DNA of 64,000 nt, taken from the IMG/VR virus record IMGVR_UViG_3300042566_001512, positions 62,001 to 126,000 of that record. One strand, 5' to 3'. The translations under genes were made by a program, and so were the position numbers. Positions 7,432 to 62,500 of this stretch are shown one piece after another (positions within the stretch are counted from its first letter, which is position 1; every line of letters starts with the position of its first letter). Below the pieces are notes generated by a model. It saw nothing but the letters and a program-made list of their open reading frames with translations, was not told the DNA's origin and did not search any database.

Positions 7432-8679
7432 ATGGAAAAAATAGACATTTCGAGTTCTATAACGCAATTCAACGACGCGTGTGACGAAGCCACGTCCGTT
7501 TACATTAAAGGTAAAGAATTACAGCAGATAGTATTAGAGGCCCCTGAGAGCGATATTAACTCAACCTCTATGAATCTACTGAACCAAGCAATAGAAAGCC
7601 TTGTAGAGCGTTCTGGGGTCTGCTACAGTACTCTTGCCATGGAGTCAGCTAGTAGTCGTGCAGAGTTGAAACAAATCTCTGTAGAAGGACTAGGTAACTT
7701 CATTCGTGAGGTATGGGAGAAGATTAAACAAGCCTTTTTTGCATTGGTCAAGAAGATCAAAGAATTCTTCACTGGTAACGAACGAAAAGCTGAAGCTATT
7801 AAGGATGAACTAGATAAAGCTAAGGAAGAATCTAAAGAGATTGAGAAAGAAGCAATCAAGAAAGATGTAGAAGGTAAAGAGCTAGAGGTAGTAATTGAGA
7901 ACCCCAGTCCATTCATTTTACACAAAAGCTACTATAAAAACAATCCTAAAGAAGTCACAGTTAAATTCCATGACCTAGTGGAGAATCTAGCTAACTACTG
8001 CATGAAGTCTCGTGAACACCATTTGATGGAATGGGTACGTGACTTTAAAGAAGACGTGATGAAACTCTTGGATAGTGTCGATCCTAAAGCAGCTAATCCA
8101 GATGTGATCAATGAAGTCTATGCTATCTTAAATAACTACATCTCTGAGAAGAAGTTGACTGGTGAACAAGTAGGCGGTATGCGTAAGTTTAAGAGCCTGG
8201 AGACAGTAGAGGAGTTTGACTCTGACTATGGTAACAAACGATACGTAATGAAGTTTGCTCTCAGTAAGGTCGGTGAGAGTAATGGTGCTGAACAACTGAT
8301 GACTGAACAAGCTATTGCTAAAGCATACAAGACTACTGAAGTAGTTAAGCTGACTGTTACTGGTGTAGAGGTGTTGGATATGAAACACCTGATGAACGCA
8401 CTGAGTGATAACTACACTGAGCTTAGTAACTACATCAAGATCTCTAGAGATATTAATTCGTTGAATATCGCAGTAGTGGATATGATTCGTGAGATTGATG
8501 GTAAGGTCACTGGTGAAATGGACGTTAGTCACGTAGTGACATTGTCCTTGATTAACAAGTGCATCAATGCTGTCAGTAAGTTGTTCACTGTGATGCAGAG
8601 CGATGTGATGTCTGTCATGAAAGAGCATACTGCTCTATACATGCTGTTCAACGATAAGTTCAAAGAACAGCTACTTTGA
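7432..8679 (+). CDS. Internal head protein-like paralogue
   Basis: LAMES and ISVEG motifs followed by 'FIREVWEKIKQAFFALVKKIKEFF'. Confidence 0.55.
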   Translation: MEKIDISSSITQFNDACDEATSVYIKGKELQQIVLEAPESDINSTSMNLLNQAIESLVERSGVCYSTLAMESASSRAELKQISVEGLGNFIREVWEKIKQAFFALVKKIKEFFTGNERKAEAIKDELDKAKEESKEIEKEAIKKDVEGKELEVVIENPSPFILHKSYYKNNPKEVTVKFHDLVENLANYCMKSREHHLMEWVRDFKEDVMKLLDSVDPKAANPDVINEVYAILNNYISEKKLTGEQVGGMRKFKSLETVEEFDSDYGNKRYVMKFALSKVGESNGAEQLMTEQAIAKAYKTTEVVKLTVTGVEVLDMKHLMNALSDNYTELSNYIKISRDINSLNIAVVDMIREIDGKVTGEMDVSHVVTLSLINKCINAVSKLFTVMQSDVMSVMKEHTALYMLFNDKFKEQLL

Positions 8680-8846
8680 GTGTGATTTTACTACCTGGAA
8701 TTAAGGTGATTTTAGGTAGTAAAAACAGTTTATGTAAAAAAATATCAGTTTGGTTTAATGTAAATGACTAAGCAACAGAGCTAGTAACAAGTATATATTA
8801 GACTAAAATCTAGTATATTACCCCGTAGGGTTTATAATCTTTATTT

Positions 8847-8880
8847 ATATTACTACTGGTTACGTAACCAGTAGTAATAT
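8847..8880. repeat. 34-bp perfect palindrome
   Basis: ATATTACTACTGGTTAC|GTAACCAGTAGTAATAT. Confidence 0.9.
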
Positions 8881-9065
8881 CACTTCGTAAATACATTCAG
8901 ACTAAATAAACATACCCAGTAGTATCTCAATACTACTGGGTATTATGCTGTCTATTGAGAAATAAGAAAAATAACCAAAAATAAAAAATTTAGTTTTTAA
9001 TAACTAACACATATGCTTTTTAATATGTATTATTAAAACGTAACCAGTAAAGGAAAAGTTAAAAA

Positions 9066-10664: not shown

Positions 10665-10668
10665 ATAA

Positions 10669-10700
10669 ATATAGCCCAAAGGGTACCCTTTGGGCTATAT
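10669..10700. terminator. 32-bp perfect palindrome of the hairpin family
   Basis: ATATAGCCCAAAGGGT|ACCCTTTGGGCTATAT followed by GAC. Confidence 0.65.
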
Positions 10701-10827
10701 GACATATTCTTTTAAATAAAATAACAGATCTTAATTGTTTTTGATTATATATTACTTAATTGCAATAGAGCCAATTATTTTTACATACTGGCTATATTAC
10801 TTTATTAGGTTTTATAGGGTTAACAAA

Positions 10828-10989
10828 ATGGACATCTTTTTTTCTGATAGCAAGACTTTCTTTATGGACGCAATGGGCATACTGGCCGGTGCCGGTGTGT
10901 TGTTTTATTTAGTAGCGCCTCTTTTTATTAAATCCGTTGAAAAGGATGAATTTGAACAAGATAAGGAAGACGGCGCAGATTCGGAGTAA
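10828..10989 (+). CDS. Small membrane protein
   Basis: ATG at 10828 chosen over the upstream TTG; single TM segment and acidic tail. Confidence 0.5.
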   Translation: MDIFFSDSKTFFMDAMGILAGAGVLFYLVAPLFIKSVEKDEFEQDKEDGADSE

Positions 10990-11083
10990 TAAAATAAAAA
11001 ACTAGTTACCGTGTTCACTCAACATAAATAAATTATATTTTTAATAAAGATATATGCGCAGTGATTAACAAAGGAATAACGTA

Positions 11084-22476: not shown

Positions 22477-22552
22477 GGGACGTTAGCTCAGCGGTTAGAG
22501 CAGAGGACTCATAATCCTTTGGTCAGGTGTTCAAATCACCTACGTCCCACCA
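22477..22552 (+). tRNA. trnI-CAU: tRNA with CAU anticodon, most likely tRNA-Ile2 (Met not excluded)
   Basis: Full 76-nt cloverleaf GGGACGT...ACGTCCC-A-CCA with GAGGA-CTCATAA-TCCTT; D and anticodon arms resemble E. coli ileX; TilS gene nearby. Confidence 0.93.
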
Positions 22553-23344: not shown

Positions 23345-23980
23345 ATGTCAAAAATTCATTTCCTGAGCAAACCCAACAAAGAAATCTATCTTGCGTTCTC
23401 CGGTGGCGTAGACTCGGTTGTTCTGCTACATACACTAATTCGTAGAAATTACAGTGTAGCACTACTTACCGTCGACCACGGTAATGAATTTGCTAAACAA
23501 GAAGTAGAGTTTTGTAAGAAGACCGCAAAGGAATTGGGATTAGAGTACAAGATATTTACTATTCCTGATTTTGATAAATCCACGTCACTTGAGGCGTTTT
23601 GGTCGAATCACAGGAACGACATTTTCCAAAAAATGGACAAGATGGTCGTGAGCGGGCATCATCTGAACGACGCCTGTGAATGGTACCTGATGTCCACTTT
23701 TCAAGGTACGCCAAAGCTTCTAGAGCACACCAACAGGAACGTGCACCGACCAATGATTACCAATACAAAGAAAGTCATCATTGAGTATGCTAATAAATAC
23801 AACTTGACGTACCTGACTGACCCCACTAACGCAGATACTACTTACAATCTAAGAAACAAAGTAAGAGCCGAGCTAATGGGAAGTGTAAAGAGTTGTTTTC
23901 CTGGTATTGAAACTACCGTGAAGAGACTCATCGTTAGAAAATATTTAAATAAAATGAAGTCGGTAGAAAATAGCATTTAA
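23345..23980 (+). CDS. tilS: Minimal tRNA(Ile)-lysidine synthetase (PP-loop domain only)
   Basis: AFSGGVDS PP-loop, VDHG, GHHLND, HRPM, YLTDPTN and RNKVR; 211 aa. Confidence 0.88.
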   Translation: MSKIHFLSKPNKEIYLAFSGGVDSVVLLHTLIRRNYSVALLTVDHGNEFAKQEVEFCKKTAKELGLEYKIFTIPDFDKSTSLEAFWSNHRNDIFQKMDKMVVSGHHLNDACEWYLMSTFQGTPKLLEHTNRNVHRPMITNTKKVIIEYANKYNLTYLTDPTNADTTYNLRNKVRAELMGSVKSCFPGIETTVKRLIVRKYLNKMKSVENSI

Positions 23981-24004
23981 TTTAAATACTATTTTCTTTA
24001 GGAC

Positions 24005-24562
24005 TCGGTGTTGAGGTAAAAAATATCTAGTTCAACATTGTTATGCGAGATAGTAAACGCAGGCACTGTCGTAATAACAGATCACAATAAATGCTCACCA
24101 ATAAAGCGCGGTTAAGTAAGTCACAAGCGAGCTTTATAACCATTACTACGTGTAATCGATTGTATTGCATGAGCGCTTTTTGGATCGTGGACAAATACTG
24201 TTGTGACTATGAAGACGGCATCCCATTTTTAATGGGGCAGCAAGTAATAGTGGAAAATTGTGGAAGTGCTGTCAAAAAACAGTATATAGGGCAACCAATC
24301 CCAGTCCCCGGGTTTAACCGTGCTTTAAAATAAAAAGCTAACTGGGGAACAGCTTGCTGTGTGAATTCTCCTAAAATTGATATGCTAAAAACGTATCAAG
24401 CCAAATACAAAGCAATTTGTAGAGGTAGTGAAATACAATAGGAGAGACCCATCTATACGTAACTAAGATCGGGTTGTAAGTATTTCAAGTCATGCTAGCA
24501 TGACTGTCCCTCTAGTGATAGAGGGTATCCTAATACATATTTAGAAAAGTATGTATTAGGAT
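24005..24562 (+). ncRNA. Candidate structured ncRNA A (~560 nt)
   Basis: Dense nested stems, two probable pseudoknots and a GCAA tetraloop, between tilS and the tRNA-Leu 5' half. Strand is inferred from context. Confidence 0.5.
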
Positions 24563-24569
24563 GCTTTGT

Positions 24570-24598
24570 GCGGGGGTGGTGAAATTGGTAGACACAAC
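24570..24598 (+). pseudogene. 5' half of an interrupted tRNA-Leu (acceptor strand plus D arm)
   Basis: GCGGGGG-TG-GTG-AAATTGGTAGA-CAC-A-AC; pairs 7/7 with the acceptor strand at 25618-25624. Confidence 0.85.
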
Positions 24599-24674
24599 CT
24601 CACTATTTCTTTTTCTATTTGATTTCAATCGCTTATCACTATAATGGTAGTATAAAATAGTGATTGGAGTTAAT

Positions 24675-25226
24675 ATGAAAAATGAATTACAAGAGAAGTG
24701 TAGTGTAAACGATAATGTTGCTTTAGATAAGAAAACTCTTCTGGGGTTATATCCAGAATACACATCTGTTCTTGGTCCCTACTTTAGACCGGACGGAAGA
24801 CAACACGTTATTTTAAATAATGCTAAAGCACCTAAAGGCACTAAAGATAAAACAAAAACTATATCTTACCCTAAGGCACTTAAAGAAGTTGAGTTAAAAG
24901 AAAAATTAAAACCTGATGAAACTGTAGATCATCATGATAGAGATTTTACTAATGACAAATTAAGTAATCTTAAGGTAAAATCTAAATCAATTCACGCGTC
25001 GCAGGATGCGCTTAGAGTTACTGTAAAGCCTATTAATTGTCCAGAATGTTCAAACCTTTTTACGCCTAACGTAAATCAAAGAAACAAACAACATGCCGGT
25101 AAAGGACAAGCTGGTCCTTTTTGTAGTAAAGTGTGTGTCGGTAAATACGGCGCAAGAGTACGAAATGAAGGCGTTATCTTAGAGAGAACGTCATTAGAAA
25201 AAACATATTATCGCATAGATAAGTAA
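24675..25226 (+). CDS. Free-standing HNH homing endonuclease with C-terminal Zn finger
   Basis: ETVDHHDRDFTNDKLSNL...H; CPEC...FCSKVC; GGAG RBS; lower GC. Confidence 0.85.
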   Translation: MKNELQEKCSVNDNVALDKKTLLGLYPEYTSVLGPYFRPDGRQHVILNNAKAPKGTKDKTKTISYPKALKEVELKEKLKPDETVDHHDRDFTNDKLSNLKVKSKSIHASQDALRVTVKPINCPECSNLFTPNVNQRNKQHAGKGQAGPFCSKVCVGKYGARVRNEGVILERTSLEKTYYRIDK

Positions 25227-25234
25227 TAAGCTAT

Positions 25235-25552
25235 CCGACTGTGACGGAACTGGTATACGTAGCAGACTTTGACTAATTTGAGTGCCTTTGAGGAAACTCT
25301 TAGAGTAGAACGCTTCAAATTCGGTGGAACTCCTACTTAACTTATGTTAAGGGACAATACCGAGCCAAGCTTTAGTTGTTAATAAACAACTATCGAAGGT
25401 GTAGAGACTAGACGGGGCGAACCTAATACAAAAGTAATGGTTAAGGTATAGTCCAGACTACAACATTTTTAAAATGGCTTAGGTAACTAAGAGTAGTAAG
25501 AAAATCTGCCGAAGGAAACTTCATGTGGGTTCAAATCCCACCAGTCGGACCA
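25235..25552 (+). tRNA. trnL-UAA: tRNA-Leu(UAA), 87 nt mature, with a group I intron (exons 25235-25269 and 25501-25552)
   Basis: CCGACTG/CAGTCGG-A-CCA acceptor; spliced arm GCAGA-CTT|AAAA-TCTGC; GAAG-GAAA-CTTC variable arm. Confidence 0.93.
25270..25500 (+). mobile_element. Group I intron (tRNA-Leu type, 231 nt, no ORF)
   Basis: P AAATTCGGTGGAA (25317), Q AATACCGAGCC (25356), R GTAGAGACTAGACG (25401), S AAGGTATAGTCC (25443); IGS TTTGAG; terminal G; insertion at U^AA. Confidence 0.92.
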
Positions 25553-25573
25553 ATATATTAAGAAAACAAAACA

Positions 25574-25628
25574 TAAAATCTGTCGGAGAGCAATCTCCAT
25601 ACGGGTTCGATCCCCGTTCCCCGCACCA
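25574..25628 (+). pseudogene. 3' half of the interrupted tRNA-Leu(UAA)
   Basis: TAA-AA-TCTGT, GGAGA-GCAA-TCTCC arm, ACGGG-TTCGATC-CCCGT, TCCCCGC-A-CCA. Confidence 0.88.
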
Positions 25629-25712
25629 TTTAAAAAATCTGATTTTAATTTATTTCAATTATATATTCTAAATGTGAGTAATAACTACTCAAGTTTTAAA
25701 AGGAAACACAAA

Positions 25713-26147
25713 ATGTCTTTCAATGCAAATGTCCTTGTGCAACTCGCTGGTGCTGAGATCAATGACGAATACAGCAGCAATCTCAACAGCATGCCCGTGG
25801 AACTCAAGCAAGCTCTGCAAGAACAACGTGAAGCTGAACGCAAAGCACTGTACGCTGAAGCCGCAAAACTCATCATGGGTATCTTCAAGCGCACCGAAGA
25901 AAAGATTGCCCAAGAAGTGCAAGAGATCCGTGAGGCTCGTCAGCGTGAAGCTAAGGCCAAGGCGCGGATTGCGGATATTGAGCGTGCCAAGCAGTACGCT
26001 GAAGAAACCAACAACTATTTGCCACTGGCTCTGTTGTGCGGAACCATGGTCATCCCTTCCGGAACTGTGAATCGTGAAAAGTTCAGTGTCCCGGTGGAAT
26101 GGAAACCCAAGTCCGAATCGGTCAAAAAAACGCCAGCTAAGAAGTAA
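25713..26147 (+). CDS. Coiled-coil hypothetical protein (144 aa)
   Basis: AAGGA RBS, GC-rich codons, E/R/K-rich helix and basic tail; promoter-like motif at 25660. Confidence 0.8.
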   Translation: MSFNANVLVQLAGAEINDEYSSNLNSMPVELKQALQEQREAERKALYAEAAKLIMGIFKRTEEKIAQEVQEIREARQREAKAKARIADIERAKQYAEETNNYLPLALLCGTMVIPSGTVNREKFSVPVEWKPKSESVKKTPAKK

Positions 26148-27325
26148 GTAGTAGCTAGGTCCAGTCTCGTGAAGGCCGAGACCGATGACGGTGCATAATC
26201 GTCATCGCGACGCTTTAAAACTACTTTGTCAAGGCACTAGCGCCTTTTGATTTATTCAAAAAGCTAGCTTTCATCAATTACATTCTTTAAGAGGTAATTG
26301 ATGGTGGTGTATCATGGATCTGCCAATCAAACCGCTTTTTATTTAGAACGATTTAGAATCATTTAAATTATTACTTTACTTAAATGGTTCTATATATTAC
26401 AATACGTTCCAAAATAATCAGTGGTGCGTAGAACATGCAACACCACGTGAGTAACTGGACTCAAACCAAACTCAGTAAAACTTTCTCTGTAATAGTCCTC
26501 AGGATAGCTGCGAGACAACGAATCCGGCTCTCAGGGGTCGGTGGAGTCACTCTTGAGATAGCAGCGATGAAAAGGAGAAAGTAAAAAAGGCTATATGTGA
26601 AACATCGCCGTGGCACGTATAGATAAACTACACAAGCGGTATAGAAATATACAGCAGCCGGATGCTCCGGTATGGTCAATGTGTAGAATTTGAATCGCCC
26701 TTGTGACGAGTAATCAAATTAATGGCCTATAACTCATAAGCTGCGTTGGTGGTGTAGATGGTATCGTACGCGAAGCTTCTATTGAGTTCAATTCCCTTTC
26801 GTGAGAAAGGGTACCTTTAAATACATTTACCCTAGTGTATTTAAAAGTATTTCAAGAACACACGGCAACACCATGTCGTTAGCTTACACAAACCTCTTAT
26901 GAGTTAGGTGAATGCGGTGCGTCGTAGACCTATACCTAGCCCCAAAACGCTTTTAAACGTCACAAGGTAACGACCTAGGCGGTGGACTTTGATTAAAGCG
27001 AGTATATCAGAGTTTACCGGGTATTAAATGGTGCTCGTCATCAGTTGCAATGACTCAAGCTGTTTTAACTAAAAATAGCTTGGAATAGATTGCAGGTGGA
27101 GAGTCTTTCCCAAGAGACTCATAGAAGCCCAGTGATGCCAACTTAAAGTGTTAAGTTCTAACCTCGCAAACTGATCTGTGGTTATTAAATCAAAAAGGCA
27201 AGCTATTGCCTCGATCAGTAAATAGAAGTAAGTAGCGCTGCTTGCCTGATAAAAATCTTTCTCTAGACTTGGTTGTGCTTGTCGAGTGTTGAGGTTTTTA
27301 TTGGAGAGGTAGTTCCTTTAAACTA
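26148..27325 (+). ncRNA. Candidate large ornate ncRNA B (0.9-1.2 kb)
   Basis: No credible ORF; many stems, GNRA loops and perfect 10-bp long-range helices; TATATTAC at 26393; ends just before tRNA-Arg. Confidence 0.6.
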
Positions 27326-27331
27326 ATAAAT

Positions 27332-27408
27332 CTGTCTGTAGCTCAACTGGATAGAGCAGCTGCCTTCTAAGCAGCAGGTCGGGGGTTCGAGTCCCTCCAG
27401 ACAGGCCA
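27332..27408 (+). tRNA. trnR-UCU: tRNA-Arg(UCU)
   Basis: CTGTCTG/CAGACAG-G-CCA; GCTGC-CTTCTAA-GCAGC; TTCGAGT. Confidence 0.96.
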
Positions 27409-27762
27409 TATATAAACTAAATAAAACAAGAAGATAAACACGGCAACTGGGTATTTTCAAAATAAACTAAAACTGTAGATATTTCACGTTTTTTTTCCAA
27501 AAAGCCCAAAACTAGAAAACCAAGTGTTGAGTTACCGATAAGTTTCTTCGGTGCTCGGTTTTCAAGGCCACTATAGAAGCGTCCCCGTGACCGGCCCGGG
27601 GCAGAGAATAGGGCTACTTAAGCCAACAAATAATCCAAATAACCGTAAGACCGGAATAAAATAAAAAGATAGTTTGCGTATTGTTTTATTACTAATAAAA
27701 TCCCAGGGTAGACTTGGGATTTTATGAAAATTTTTTTCAATTAGATCTATAGTGGAAATGAC

Positions 27763-60403: not shown

Positions 60404-62500
60404 ATGATTAACACCAACCAACAATTCCAAGCACTTCCGCATAGCCCCGTACAGCCACAGTATCAGTTTGTTCAAATAAATGTAAACAACTGTCCAGTAA
60501 ACTTGGCGCCCCTGCAAACACAGATTCATCCCGGCCTGGTAAACTATCTTGTCCCTATCGCCGTAACGTGTATCAATGAATTGCAGAATAAGGCCACACA
60601 GAACAGCCTTCGGTTGTTTCTGTTTAATCAGATGGCCGCAAACACTTTCAATAACCAGCTGTTTTTGCAGCTAATGAAATCGGTGTTAGAGTTGGTCGAA
60701 TGCACGGCCGAGCAGGGAGTTCAGCTAGAGAGCGCAATTGAGTACTCGGTGGAAATGACCATTCAGTTGTATGCGCTCAATAACTTGTATACCTACCCAT
60801 CGCTCAACCAGTATGTAGACCCCAACACACAGGCAGGCCTTCAACGTCTTCAGAAAAAGCAGTCTGAGGTGCTTTATGTTCTTAGTCAACACCAGCAGCA
60901 GAAAGCAATGCGTCAACAGCAGATGAGCCCATACGGGTTTCAGCGACCGCAAATGCTTCAGCAAAATGGTATCAGCGACGCTTTTCAACAGCAAAGCAAT
61001 CAATCGTGGCAGACAAAGAGCACGGGTCTATTCTCCTCGCCCATTCAAACTCCAGCCGTCAGTGAGCCTCAAAACGGGACAATGGTAGACGGGTGGGCCG
61101 CTGCAGCTCAGAATTCTCTAAGTCAGATCAACCAGCAGTCACTACCCACCTTGCAGCAGGCCTACCCTTTTCATCAAGAACAAACGCCTTTTAAGTTCAA
61201 CACATCAAATAACGCAGTGCCTGCCGCTCAAGCCGAATCTGCTAAGGTAAACTCTAACCCAGTTCATCAGCAATATGAGAAGTTTTACCATCATCCCGAT
61301 GGCAAACTGATGGTAAAGCATGGAGATCCTGGGGTAAAGTTTAAAATGACAAAGAAGTGGCCGTTTGCACCCAGCCCATCAAACCTAGCCGACGTTTATT
61401 ACGTACTCCACGAAGACGGATCCATGGAGCCGATTATTAAGAAACTCACAAAGGAACAGCAAATGGAAAAATCTCGACATTATGCAATTACAAGCACTCC
61501 CACTGCCCACAGTAAGATCTGGGGTAGCGTCTTGGCCCACGGCGCCGCTGAGCGCCGAGAGGAAGCCGACAACATGTTCGAATCTGGAGAATTTGAAAAA
61601 GGCATTAAGACTGATCTAGATTTCAAGAAATCATCAGTAAATAAGGACGAAATCGTGAAAGACGAAGTGTTTGTTGCCGTTATTTCGGAAGGGGACGCGT
61701 GGAGTCAGACTGACATTAGCCTATCTATTGCCGACCGCGACGATAAGAAATGTACGGCATACGTCAAACCCGTACTTCGTGTTAAGCCAATCGTTTCAAA
61801 GTGCGACACAAAAGATCTAGTGGACAGCCTGAAGGAATGCACCACTTTAGAGCAATGCGCCAGTAAACTAAAAGCGGAAAACTACAGCATAAAGAGTCTC
61901 TCTGACGTGAATCAGCGTCGTCAGCGGCAAACCGTTTTTGGTAAAATTAACAGAACTCTCACGGAGTCGCTTAATCATTATCTCAAATATAAACTGGCCC
62001 TTGGCGGCGTACAAGTAGGGTCGTTTGAAGACGATGGCGGAGAGCTAATTCAGTATTTGAAAGATGAATATCCTGAGCAGTATGCTGCGGCTCTTTCTGA
62101 TAATCAGGCCGTCATTATCAGGACGGTGCTTTCTACCACGTCCGACGACTTTGTTGGATCCGAGTTTGAAGAGTCGCTAAAAGAACAGTATCTATCCGAA
62201 CTGGATATCGGTCAGAACAATTCTCTTTTCTTGTATAGAAAAGAGTTCTTTATGTCCATCAACATGTTTTCAGCGGAGATAAATGAACACGTAGATGATC
62301 AGGCCGATACGATTAGCGTATTCTCTGATAGCTTCCCTCGATTGTATTCTCTGTGTGAACATCTATCATCGTGTGCAAAATCCCTTGATGAGAACGAGGA
62401 TTACGTATATAGCTACTACATGAAAACCCTGGACGACGTGGTGTACGTTGTAAATAGAAGTGCACTTCGCCCAACCACTTTCATTGTTGGACTAAAGTGA
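60404..62500 (+). CDS. Conserved jumbo-phage hypothetical protein with a Q-rich region
   Basis: 698 aa; Q/S/P-rich low-complexity middle segment. Confidence 0.7.
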   Translation: MINTNQQFQALPHSPVQPQYQFVQINVNNCPVNLAPLQTQIHPGLVNYLVPIAVTCINELQNKATQNSLRLFLFNQMAANTFNNQLFLQLMKSVLELVECTAEQGVQLESAIEYSVEMTIQLYALNNLYTYPSLNQYVDPNTQAGLQRLQKKQSEVLYVLSQHQQQKAMRQQQMSPYGFQRPQMLQQNGISDAFQQQSNQSWQTKSTGLFSSPIQTPAVSEPQNGTMVDGWAAAAQNSLSQINQQSLPTLQQAYPFHQEQTPFKFNTSNNAVPAAQAESAKVNSNPVHQQYEKFYHHPDGKLMVKHGDPGVKFKMTKKWPFAPSPSNLADVYYVLHEDGSMEPIIKKLTKEQQMEKSRHYAITSTPTAHSKIWGSVLAHGAAERREEADNMFESGEFEKGIKTDLDFKKSSVNKDEIVKDEVFVAVISEGDAWSQTDISLSIADRDDKKCTAYVKPVLRVKPIVSKCDTKDLVDSLKECTTLEQCASKLKAENYSIKSLSDVNQRRQRQTVFGKINRTLTESLNHYLKYKLALGGVQVGSFEDDGGELIQYLKDEYPEQYAAALSDNQAVIIRTVLSTTSDDFVGSEFEESLKEQYLSELDIGQNNSLFLYRKEFFMSINMFSAEINEHVDDQADTISVFSDSFPRLYSLCEHLSSCAKSLDENEDYVYSYYMKTLDDVVYVVNRSALRPTTFIVGLK

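Follow-up and report, generated by a model that had tools for sequence, protein, structure and literature searches.

The window analysed here comprises 64,000 nucleotides (positions 62,001 to 126,000) of IMG/VR record IMGVR_UViG_3300042566_001512, a phiKZ-like jumbo phage that possesses phiKZ internal head proteins. The closest cultured phages found, Burkholderia/Ralstonia phiKZ-like phages, are only 37-41% identical in one virion structural protein, and no cultured relative is known to carry the RNA described below. Positions 26148-27325 form a stretch of 1.18 kb without any + strand ORF longer than 49 aa. It is located between a gene for a 157-aa protein and tRNA-Arg(TCT), the latter called by both ARAGORN and Rfam, and consists of three parts: a twister-sister ribozyme, a zone with a terminator-like hairpin, a spacer and a putative promoter (26231-26400), and a conserved, strongly structured core of ~0.93 kb (Table 1).

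Table 1. Features in and around the non-coding region (coordinates of the window)
Position	Strand	Feature
25260-25472		Group I intron hit, outside the region
25634-27328		Block kept in the relative L018
26145-26147		Stop codon of the upstream 157-aa gene
26146-26226	+	Twister-sister ribozyme, three-way-junction type
26146-26152 / 26220-26226	+	P1 of the ribozyme, overlapping the upstream stop codon
26154-26158	+	GCUAG of the ribozyme
26212-26214	+	GCU of the ribozyme
26215/26216	+	Expected cleavage site
26231-26256	+	Terminator-like hairpin (AAGGC-ACTAGC-GCCTT) followed by a T-run
26272-26366	+	Conserved hairpin (26272-26303) and most conserved stretch of the region
26301-26366	+	Possible 21-aa ORF, AGAGG 6 nt upstream
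26350-26400	+	AT-rich imperfect palindrome (AGAATCATTTAA...TTAAATGGTTCT) directly followed by TATATTAC
26393-26400	+	TATATTAC, putative phiKZ-type early promoter
~26405-27331	+	Core structured RNA of ~0.93 kb, about 35 mostly local helices (start inferred from the promoter; end is the RNase P site of tRNA-Arg)
26480-26582	+	Mimic of the 23S rRNA L1 stalk
26480-26488 / 26574-26582	+	H76 of the mimic (ACTTTCTC/GAGAAAGT)
26507-26511 / 26561-26565; 26514-26516 / 26546-26548	+	H77 of the mimic
26523-26530 / 26535-26542	+	H78 of the mimic
26501-26506	+	T-loop string AGGAUA
26553-26560	+	T-loop string UUGAGAUA
26628-26686	+	Three-way domain with a GNRA-capped hairpin and the hairpin CCGGA/TCCGG
27020-27139	+	Domain of 120 nt closed by a 13-bp helix, three inner hairpins
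27246-27304	+	3'-terminal hairpin domain with the conserved loop TTGGTTGTGCT
27332-27408	+	tRNA-Arg(TCT)

Relatives and conservation of the region

The observation made in a preliminary description, i.e. a long, ORF-free and stem-rich region, is confirmed, and every stem listed there is present at its position. Perfect inverted repeats of 10 bp or more occur five times, compared with 0.66 +/- 0.82 in 300 dinucleotide shuffles, of which one reaches five. An ENA contig (L018/L019, hereafter L018) keeps the block at 84% identity, and homology stops 3 nt before tRNA-Arg, which is absent at this place in L018 and replaced by a protein gene. Additional relatives (L020, L021, X2, X4) cover parts of the region. 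DNA comparisons with 50,697 phage records returned no match for the region, only tRNA matches for the surrounding 20 kb, and, with the L1-stalk mimic as query, only true 23S contaminants. Searches of IMG/VR with the flanking proteins and with a 21-mer from a conserved block recovered only the source contig. Two metagenome scans, one with a protein alignment and one with a lineage-specific DNA pattern, found nothing, and a scan of genome contigs returned a single chance match inside a coding region without stalk architecture.

At gathering score, Rfam detects only the two tRNAs, and the informative hits were obtained only from permissive E-value scans. GOLLD, ROOL, OLE, HEARO or any other large-RNA model, proposed beforehand as a check, give no hit at E <= 10 with permissive filters on 2.25 kb and on 9 kb. 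Models of tmRNA, RNase P RNA and group I/II introns give nothing significant inside 26148-27325, in agreement with the preliminary description.

Twister-sister ribozyme

The first 80 nt score 31.7 bits against Rfam RF02681, below the gathering score of 34, whereas the orthologous copies of L018, L021 and L020 score 37.8, 37.6 and 35.7, respectively, all above the threshold. The conserved internal-loop nucleotides (G5 C6 A8 G9 and G59 C60 U61) and helices P1, P2, P4 and P5 are present, and P5 and P1 show compensatory changes among the four sequences. However, the window reads GCUU-UAAAA where the three relatives read GCUUAU, and so lacks the essential cleavage-site A63. As A63U abolishes activity while position 62 tolerates any base (PMC5660989), the window copy probably cannot cleave.

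Terminator-like hairpin, spacer and putative promoter

The terminator-like hairpin was found by a terminator scan, is invariant in all four relatives, and probably ends the upstream transcription unit. The subsequent hairpin and conserved stretch have a substitution rate against L018 of 0.045, compared with 0.14-0.34 in their surroundings. The possible 21-codon ORF is kept in L018 and extended in L021, but most changes fall at codon positions 1 and 2, so that a peptide remains doubtful and an RNA- or DNA-level element is as likely. The zone of the palindrome varies by indels, being shortened in L018 and mostly replaced in L021/X2, but the palindrome arms are kept, with AGAAC/GTTCT changed to AGGAC/GTCCT in L021. 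TATATTAC is the published phiKZ early-promoter consensus (PMC7058600), and all five copies in the window are on the + strand and intergenic.

The structured core

The core (26405-27331) folds at -279.8 kcal/mol on the + strand (z = -4.2, none of 20 shuffles as good), compared with z = -2.6 on the - strand. The RNAalifold consensus of window and L018 is -230.6 kcal/mol against -149.3 +/- 7.7 for column shuffles, with 18 double-compensatory pairs against 6.75 +/- 2.3 (highest 12 in 60 shuffles), and -183.8 on the minus strand. Substitutions in 26411-27328 show no 3-base periodicity, and a small-protein reading of the core was rejected on this ground. Only two full-length sequences exist (window and L018), thus the covariation outside the L1-stalk mimic and the ribozyme rests on one pairwise comparison. 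Within the core, the tetraloop class of the GNRA-capped hairpin is kept (GAAA in the window, GCAA in L018), CCGGA/TCCGG becomes CTGGA/TCCAG, a compensatory change, and six and four double-compensatory pairs are located in the 120-nt domain and the 3'-terminal domain, respectively.

A DNA-level element (replication origin, packaging or recombination site), or a long regulatory leader whose inverted repeats act as DNA, would fit the many inverted repeats, the AT-rich stretch and the group I intron/HNH mobile DNA nearby, but is very unlikely. The strand asymmetry of folding, including 28 against 14 wobble-compatible one-sided changes, points to RNA, and both the rRNA mimic and the ribozyme are RNA-level objects.

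The preliminary description regarded the whole 0.9-1.2 kb as one giant ornate RNA with long-range helices and a pseudoknot, which would make it an RNA of the GOLLD/ROOL type, perhaps forming multimeric cages. Size, phage origin and the position next to a tRNA match what is written about GOLLD and ROOL (PMC12286853), the inverted repeats exceed chance and GNRA loops are conserved. However, the two perfect 10-bp long-range helices (26731/26896 and 26699/26958) fall in L018 to 5 bp, or to 4 bp plus wobbles with mismatches, and one carries insertions in X2, although with two sequences this comparison is weak. The only helix that would close the whole RNA is 5 bp with wobbles, and the first 250 nt belong to the ribozyme, terminator and variable spacer. 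Helices supported by covariation are mostly local, a string of hairpin and three-way domains, so that 'ornate' in the GOLLD/ROOL sense is not shown, and this reading is doubtful. The preliminary interpretation is therefore supported in part only: the region is non-coding, conserved and strongly structured on the + strand, TATATTAC is a plausible start signal, the ~0.9 kb core ends exactly at tRNA-Arg, and no known large-RNA family matches it, but the 1.18 kb are not one RNA, the ribozyme was missed, the long-range helices and pseudoknot are not supported by the relative, and the stem ACTTTCTC/GAGAAAGT was not recognised as H76 of an L1-stalk mimic, the most informative feature of the region.

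The L1-stalk mimic

The 5' part of the core is a sequence-level mimic of 23S rRNA helices 76-78, the L1 stalk, which holds protein uL1 and departing tRNA in the ribosome. It matches RF02541 locally at model positions 2120-2221 (42 bits, E = 3.7e-10), and no other rRNA similarity was found in the region. The same isolated element (50-63 bits to LSU positions ~2125-2215) occurs in about ten other large uncultivated phages, upstream of and on the same strand as a tRNA in every locus where a tRNA was found nearby. It lies 57 nt to ~1 kb upstream of the next tRNA in the phage contigs L005/L006/L007/L013, L008/L010, L009 and L017. Of 15 pattern hits only L016 is a true 23S.

In an alignment of 15 sequences including E. 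coli 23S, 96.7% of the cells of the 16 H77/H78 pairs are paired and 11 pairs have double changes, which none of 500 shuffles reach. A closing H76 forms in all ten copies folded, with two compensatory changes between window and L018. AGGAUA and UUGAxAUA are invariant in all 15 sequences, and the nucleotides shared with E. coli 23S include the double T-loop strings (AG..A and UG..A) described as the tRNA-elbow docking module (PMC3664808). Most phage copies keep GU-AGG and UUGAAAUA, while the window lineage has UC-AGG and UUGAGAUA. The positions aligned with the platform residues G2112 and A2169, which stack on the tRNA elbow, appear to be U and G in the window lineage, although the numbering is only approximate because the E. 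coli operon used has 4 extra bases, and tRNA docking may differ.

A functionless, chance-captured fragment of host 23S rRNA in junk DNA is very unlikely. Two pattern hits, L003 and L014, both at contig ends, are close to proteobacterial 23S and may be true rRNA pieces or recent captures. However, only H76-78 is ever present, each time closed by its own H76 stem and kept in unrelated phages with abundant compensatory change. In the relative X4, 27 of the 29 differences considered in the contig lie outside the mimic, at 26594-26669.

Alternatively, the region could be a precursor for several small stable RNAs, with an L1-stalk RNA of ~100-250 nt as the functional unit and the other hairpin domains as independent small RNAs or processing spacers, cut apart by host RNases as in a tRNA array. 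In L005/L006/L007/L013 the mimic is a compact unit between two tRNA-Arg genes. Only the ~75-nt mimic is shared between unrelated phages: an nhmmer search with the window/L018 profile against the other L1-bearing loci matched nothing else, and an apparent extension in L011 did not hold up on inspection, as L011 shows repeated TTGCGGGT motifs instead. The covariation-supported helices are almost all local, and a 254-nt contig from a wastewater RNA-seq run, the only RNA-labelled run with a relative, covers just 26445-26700. This contig is no more than a weak hint of expression, as the run is flagged as probably DNA, and direct transcript evidence is lacking. In contrast, the whole 0.93 kb is conserved as a block with long invariant single-stranded stretches between the hairpins, and no internal promoter or terminator signal was found. 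Four unrelated phages have 0.5-1 kb of non-coding sequence between the mimic and the next tRNA, and the ~1.1-kb non-coding stretch around the mimic is unusually stable in L017, L011 and L015 (z = -6.3, -4.5 and -3.8, respectively). We consider this alternative possible but unlikely.

Potential function

Our analysis demonstrates the composite nature of the region: a twister-sister ribozyme directly on the upstream stop codon with a terminator-like hairpin behind it, a short indel-variable spacer ending in the phiKZ early-promoter consensus, and a conserved, non-coding, strongly structured + strand RNA with a sequence-level copy of the L1 stalk as 5' domain, abutting tRNA-Arg. Transcription, processing, self-cleavage, folding like the ribosomal stalk and binding of uL1 or tRNA are inferred. 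In this view, ribozyme and terminator finish the upstream mRNA, and the phage's virion RNA polymerase starts at about 26405 early in infection and makes one precursor of structured RNA and tRNA-Arg, from which RNase P cutting at 27331/27332 would free the 3' end of the RNA. As L018 has no tRNA after the block, 3'-end formation cannot depend on RNase P everywhere. The L1-stalk domain would either sequester free uL1, which is also the repressor of the L11 operon, or dock the elbow of (deacylated) tRNAs on its double T-loop platform, and either way the phage would be altering host translation or tRNA handling. The remaining ~750 nt would act as a scaffold or as further binding modules, with the RNA either staying whole or being cut into modules. 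uL1 forms the stalk and represses r-protein synthesis, and one jumbo phage even encodes uL1 (PMC13157829). We assign this explanation a probability of roughly 0.55, with the binding of uL1 or tRNA being pure inference.

More tentatively, free-standing L1-stalk RNAs may represent an undescribed class of phage translation-takeover RNA. Large phages would express, together with their tRNAs, an isolated copy of the ribosome's E-site tRNA-ejecting arm, built in some lineages, such as this phiKZ-like phage from an early promoter, into a ~1 kb multi-domain RNA. The copy would capture host uL1, changing ribosome composition and r-protein autoregulation, hold or shield tRNAs by their elbows, or act as a decoy for a host factor that recognises the stalk. 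Literature searches for phage L1-stalk or rRNA mimics, including the full text of one paper returned, found no description. Phages are known to carry tRNAs, a few ribosomal proteins and large RNAs of unknown function near tRNA islands, but a virus-encoded copy of a functional rRNA domain would be a new way to interfere with the host ribosome. The two well-defined partners of the L1 stalk, uL1 and the tRNA elbow, give this RNA, unlike GOLLD or ROOL, an immediately testable biochemical hypothesis, and the RNA also offers a handle on why big structured RNAs sit beside phage tRNA genes. Furthermore, rRNA covariance models run below their whole-gene thresholds can reveal rRNA-domain mimics in viral genomes.

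Comparison with known systems

The ribozyme shares with RF02681 the conserved L1 and SL4 nucleotides and helices P1, P2, P4 and P5, but is the three-way form without P3. GOLLD and ROOL are likewise large structured non-coding RNAs of phages, often next to tRNA islands and of unknown function, and GOLLD has been reported to pull down ribosomes (PMC12286853). The present RNA differs from them in the lack of a covariance-model match and of supported pseudoknots or a long-range scaffold, and in the presence of an rRNA-derived domain. T-box stem I and RNase P share only the double T-loop motif for docking tRNA elbows, whereas this element shares the actual L1-stalk sequence and helices, and no specifier, antiterminator or catalytic domain was detected. 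Ribosomal-protein operon leaders, for example the L1 operator of the L11 operon mRNA, similarly copy an r-protein binding site outside the ribosome, the idea being competition with rRNA for uL1. Those operators are small helix-and-loop mimics in cis on a cellular mRNA, while here the complete stalk, including the double T-loop, is encoded by a virus as part of a non-coding RNA. The L1 stalk of bacterial 23S rRNA has the same three-helix layout, and about 30 nucleotides are identical with E. coli 23S and all the phage copies (AGGAUAG, GxGAGxC, GGAGxC, UUGAxAUAxC). The phage element, however, stands alone, closed by its own short H76, inside a phage non-coding RNA or tRNA array rather than inside a 2.9-kb rRNA, its H78 and H76 sequences are free to vary, and the window lineage reads CUCAGG and UUGAGAUA where rRNA reads GUGUAGG and UUGAAAUA.

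Genomic context of the structured region

The window belongs to the 208.8 kb viral contig IMGVR_UViG_3300042566_001512, which encodes phiKZ-type internal head proteins, head-tail proteins, ribonucleotide reductase, thymidylate synthase and an NAD-dependent ligase. Its closest cultured relatives are phiKZ-like jumbo phages of Burkholderia and Ralstonia, at only 37-41% protein identity. The best DNA holder is a lake-water metagenome, while more distant variants occur in freshwater and wastewater runs.

The preliminary description of a gene-free, stem-rich stretch at this place is confirmed. Between the stop codon of a 157-aa gene and tRNA-Arg(TCT) no + strand ORF above 49 aa is present, and all stems listed in that description were recovered at their positions. 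Perfect inverted repeats of 10 bp or more occur 5 times, against 0.66 +/- 0.82 in dinucleotide shuffles (1 of 300 shuffles reaches 5). The core folds with z = -4.2 on the + strand and z = -2.6 on the - strand. The proposed interpretation, a single giant RNA with long-range helices, is only partly supported.

Positions of the features described (window coordinates unless another contig is named)
Feature	Sequence	Position
TATATTAC tandem pair, intergenic gap 8680-9065	window (+)	8814, 8846
TATATTAC tandem pair, intergenic gap 10665-11083	window (+)	10748, 10793
tRNA with anticodon CAT	window	22477-22552
PP-loop ATPase ORF	window	23345-23980
tRNA-Leu(TAA), first 27 nt	window	24570-24596
HNH endonuclease ORF	window	24660-25226
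Group I intron core	window	25260-25472
Foreign tRNA-like T-arm piece	window	~25520-25560
tRNA-Leu(TAA), last 27 nt	window	25599-25625
Stop codon of the 157-aa gene (end)	window	26147
Twister-sister element (RF02681 match)	window	26147-26227
Terminator-like hairpin with T-run	window	26231-26256
Control region	window	26231-26400
Conserved hairpin	window	26272-26303
Possible 21-codon ORF	window	26301-26366
TATATTAC, putative promoter	window (+)	26393
Core structured RNA	window (+)	26405-27331
L1-stalk mimic	window	26480-26582
Helix CCGGA/TCCGG	window	26657-26671
Helix	window	26695-26709
Helix (TTTAAATACA stem)	window	26812-26849
Helix	window	26988-27011
120-nt domain	window	27020-27139
Terminal domain	window	27246-27304
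tRNA-Arg(TCT)	window	27332-27408
Gene-free stretch after tRNA-Arg	window	27409-27762
GC-rich structured piece	window	~27525-27625
Strong terminator-like hairpin and T-run	window	27695-27725
Stretch that keeps the 10-mer TCTGTCTGTA (tRNA-Arg junction)	L018	3040-3075
Pattern hit at contig end	L003	3657-3884
YrlA match	L007 (-)	7838-7956
Non-coding region around the mimic	L011	9690-10834
Pattern hit at contig end	L014	1-98

Upstream of the region, the tRNA-Leu(TAA) gene is split by a 1,002-nt insert, which replaces the anticodon arm and variable arm and carries an HNH endonuclease ORF, a group I intron core (51.3 bits) and a foreign tRNA-like T-arm piece. A tRNA with anticodon CAT, called as tRNA-Met, lies ~800 nt upstream of a PP-loop ATPase ORF of the TilS/ATP_bind_3 type (PF01171, 2.2e-27); the pair may be a tRNA-Ile2 and its lysidine synthetase instead.

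Related sequences and conserved folding

The upstream protein has only three relatives in a collection of 5.8 billion proteins. Their contigs yielded four related DNA stretches: L018 and L019 (84% identical to the window over 25634-27328), L021 (partial, reaching window position 26634) and L020 (partial, reaching 26340). Two scans of metagenomes returned nothing. L018 likewise possesses ~1.19 kb without a called gene at this place. Homology stops at 27328, 3 nt before the tRNA-Arg of the window, and L018 has a protein gene there instead of the tRNA, although it keeps the 10-mer TCTGTCTGTA, i.e. the junction and first bases of the window's tRNA-Arg, which may be a remnant of a tRNA deletion.

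L021 has the intact tRNA-Leu, and the X2/L021 phage (the X2 relative) is 100% identical to the window on both sides of the insert (window 23975-25764), but only ~89% identical from the 157-aa gene onwards (25765-26634), a mosaic that suggests recombination around the RNA region. L020 has a group I intron in the region upstream of the 144-aa gene, and L018 a 275-aa HNH gene next to an intact tRNA.

Substitutions between window and L018, the only two full-length sequences, show no 3-base periodicity anywhere in 26411-27328. RNAalifold on this pair gives -230.6 kcal/mol, against -149.3 +/- 7.7 for column-shuffled alignments, with 18 pairs changed on both sides against 6.75 +/- 2.3 (highest 12 of 60 shuffles). 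The shuffle does not preserve dinucleotides, so these z-values are somewhat generous. The reverse strand gives -183.8 and half as many wobble-compatible one-sided changes. The region is therefore a conserved structured RNA on the + strand.

Twister-sister element at the 5' end

A permissive Rfam scan places the twister-sister ribozyme RF02681 at the 5' end with 31.7 bits, below the gathering score of 34, whereas the orthologous elements of L018, L021 and L020 score 37.8, 37.6 and 35.7, all above threshold. Among the four sequences, P5 carries two compensatory changes (GATGACGG/TCGTCATC against GACGATGG/CCATCGTT) and P1, which overlaps the stop codon of the upstream gene, is remodelled compensatorily (AAGTAGT/ACTACTT against AAGTATA/TATACTT). 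According to the structure paper (PMC5660989), cleavage is at C62-A63, position 62 tolerates any base, and A63U abolishes activity. The relatives read GCUUAU, matching the consensus with C62 replaced by U, but the window reads GCUU-UAAAA and lacks the A; the source run shows no variant at this place. Judged from sequence, the window copy is therefore probably inactive or impaired.

Control region preceding the core

The following stretch, up to position 26400, is a control region and not part of a giant RNA. A terminator-like hairpin with a T-run is invariant in all relatives. The next hairpin and the 60 nt after it are the best-conserved part of all (substitution rate 0.045). This stretch can be read as a 21-codon ORF (MVVYHGSANQTAFYLERFRII) with a Shine-Dalgarno-like AGAGG 6 nt upstream and its start codon inside the hairpin. 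However, changes among the four sequences fall mostly at codon positions 1 and 2, the C-terminus is not kept, and the substitutions do not look like protein-level selection, so that the ORF remains doubtful.

The AT-rich stretch that follows is shortened in L018 and mostly replaced in X2/L021, but its palindrome arms survive, with a compensatory AGAAC/GTTCT to AGGAC/GTCCT change in L021. It ends in TATATTAC, the published promoter consensus of phiKZ; the same paper describes the related OBP-type promoter as an early promoter (PMC7058600, Table 2). The five copies of this octamer in the window are all on the + strand and all in intergenic AT-rich gaps, although their count alone is not above chance. 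A transcript start near 26400, as suggested in the preliminary description, is therefore reasonable but unproven.

A mimic of the ribosomal L1 stalk

The bacterial LSU model matches the 5' part of the core locally at model positions 2120-2221 (42 bits, E = 3.7e-10), i.e. helices 76-78, the L1 stalk. The previously listed ACTTTCTC/GAGAAAGT stem is helix 76. Nothing else in the region resembles rRNA.

A degenerate pattern of the invariant stalk nucleotides detected 15 stretches in IMG/VR. One (L016) is a genuine 23S gene and one is the window's own contig. Two (L003 and L014, both at contig ends) are close to proteobacterial 23S, the L003 match extending beyond the stalk to model position 2266, and may be true rRNA fragments or assembly chimeras and not phage mimics. 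The remaining eleven (nine distinct sequences) are isolated 72-92-nt matches on contigs of 16-413 kb, most of them inside tRNA arrays and on the tRNA strand; the six listed by cmscan score 50-63 bits. The order of mimic, non-coding sequence and tRNA recurs among these loci.

Distance from the L1-stalk mimic to the next tRNA (L numbers are IMG/VR pattern hits)
Locus	Distance	tRNA
L005/6/7/13	57 nt	tRNA-Arg
L008/10	~530 nt	tRNA-Val
L009	~660 nt	tRNA-Ser
Window	~750 nt	tRNA-Arg
L017	~1000 nt	tRNA-Gln

In a 15-sequence alignment with E. coli 23S, about 30 positions are invariant (AGGAUAG, GxGAGxC, GGAGxC, UUGAxAUAxC). H77/H78 are 96.7% paired and 11 of 16 pairs show changes on both sides; none of 500 shuffles reached the observed values, and slid controls fell to 33-52% paired. 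All ten copies tested fold with their own closing H76.

Only the mimic is shared between unrelated phages. Even so, the ~1.1 kb non-coding stretches around it in L017, L011 and L015 are also unusually stable (z = -6.3, -4.5 and -3.8, respectively). The >1.1 kb non-coding region of L011 contains about ten copies of a TTGCGG(G)T motif. The tRNA array of L007 that holds a mimic also contains a sub-threshold match to YrlA, the Y RNA-like family (39.8 bits, E = 2.7e-5). Among 50,697 phage GenBank records none has the element at BLAST sensitivity.

Remaining helices of the core

The consensus fold is a string of about 35 mostly local helices. Compensatory support is found, among others, in the CCGGA/TCCGG helix (changed to CTGGA/TCCAG), the helices starting at 26695, 26812 (the TTTAAATACA stem of the preliminary description) and 26988, the 120-nt domain (6 double changes) and the terminal domain (4 double changes). 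One GNRA loop changes from GAAA to GCAA, and a GUGA loop is invariant.

The two long-range helices proposed previously do not survive comparison. In L018, AACTCATAAG/CTTATGAGTT becomes AACTCACACA/CTTACGAGTT, leaving 5 bp, and X2 has insertions inside it. CCTTGTGACG/CGTCACAAGG becomes CTTCGTGACC/CGTCACAGGG, with 4 bp followed by a C-A mismatch and wobbles. AACTCA can instead pair locally with TGAGTT at 26783, a pairing kept in both sequences. The proposed pseudoknot from the 26699 loop is neither supported nor excluded.

Beyond tRNA-Arg, 350 nt are without a gene and include a GC-rich structured piece and a strong terminator-like hairpin. They may hold a further small RNA on the same transcript and are nearly identical in X2.

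Predicted function

Our data establish the ribozyme family assignment, the conserved structured + strand RNA, the L1-stalk mimic with its recurrence in phage tRNA regions, and the match to the promoter consensus. All further steps are inferences: the upstream mRNA would end at the ribozyme and terminator, an early transcript would start at about 26405 and run through the 0.93 kb RNA and tRNA-Arg to the terminator-like hairpin and T-run downstream, RNase P would release the 3' end of the RNA, and the stalk domain would bind what the ribosomal stalk binds. Transcription itself is inferred, as the one RNA-labelled run holds only a 254-nt contig over 26445-26700 of a relative and is flagged as probably DNA. 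The mimic keeps the whole double T-loop module, which is more than the small uL1 operators on mRNAs are known to keep and argues that tRNA docking, or the full native fold, is under selection. In the window lineage, however, the two platform positions appear changed, to U and G, and the putative binding may be uL1 capture or tRNA holding, between which we cannot distinguish.

Comparison with known RNA families

Literature searches and a full-text check for phage L1-stalk or rRNA mimics found no description; the nearest item is a jumbo cyanophage that encodes the uL1 protein. Large phage RNAs by tRNA islands and rRNA mimicry are both known, and we regard the present RNA as a new variant of these, with a fair chance that it represents a new class. 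GOLLD and ROOL are described as phage and prophage RNAs near tRNA islands, of unknown function, and GOLLD has been reported to pull down ribosomes (PMC12286853). The RNA reported here shares that setting, but it matches neither model and lacks demonstrated long-range architecture.
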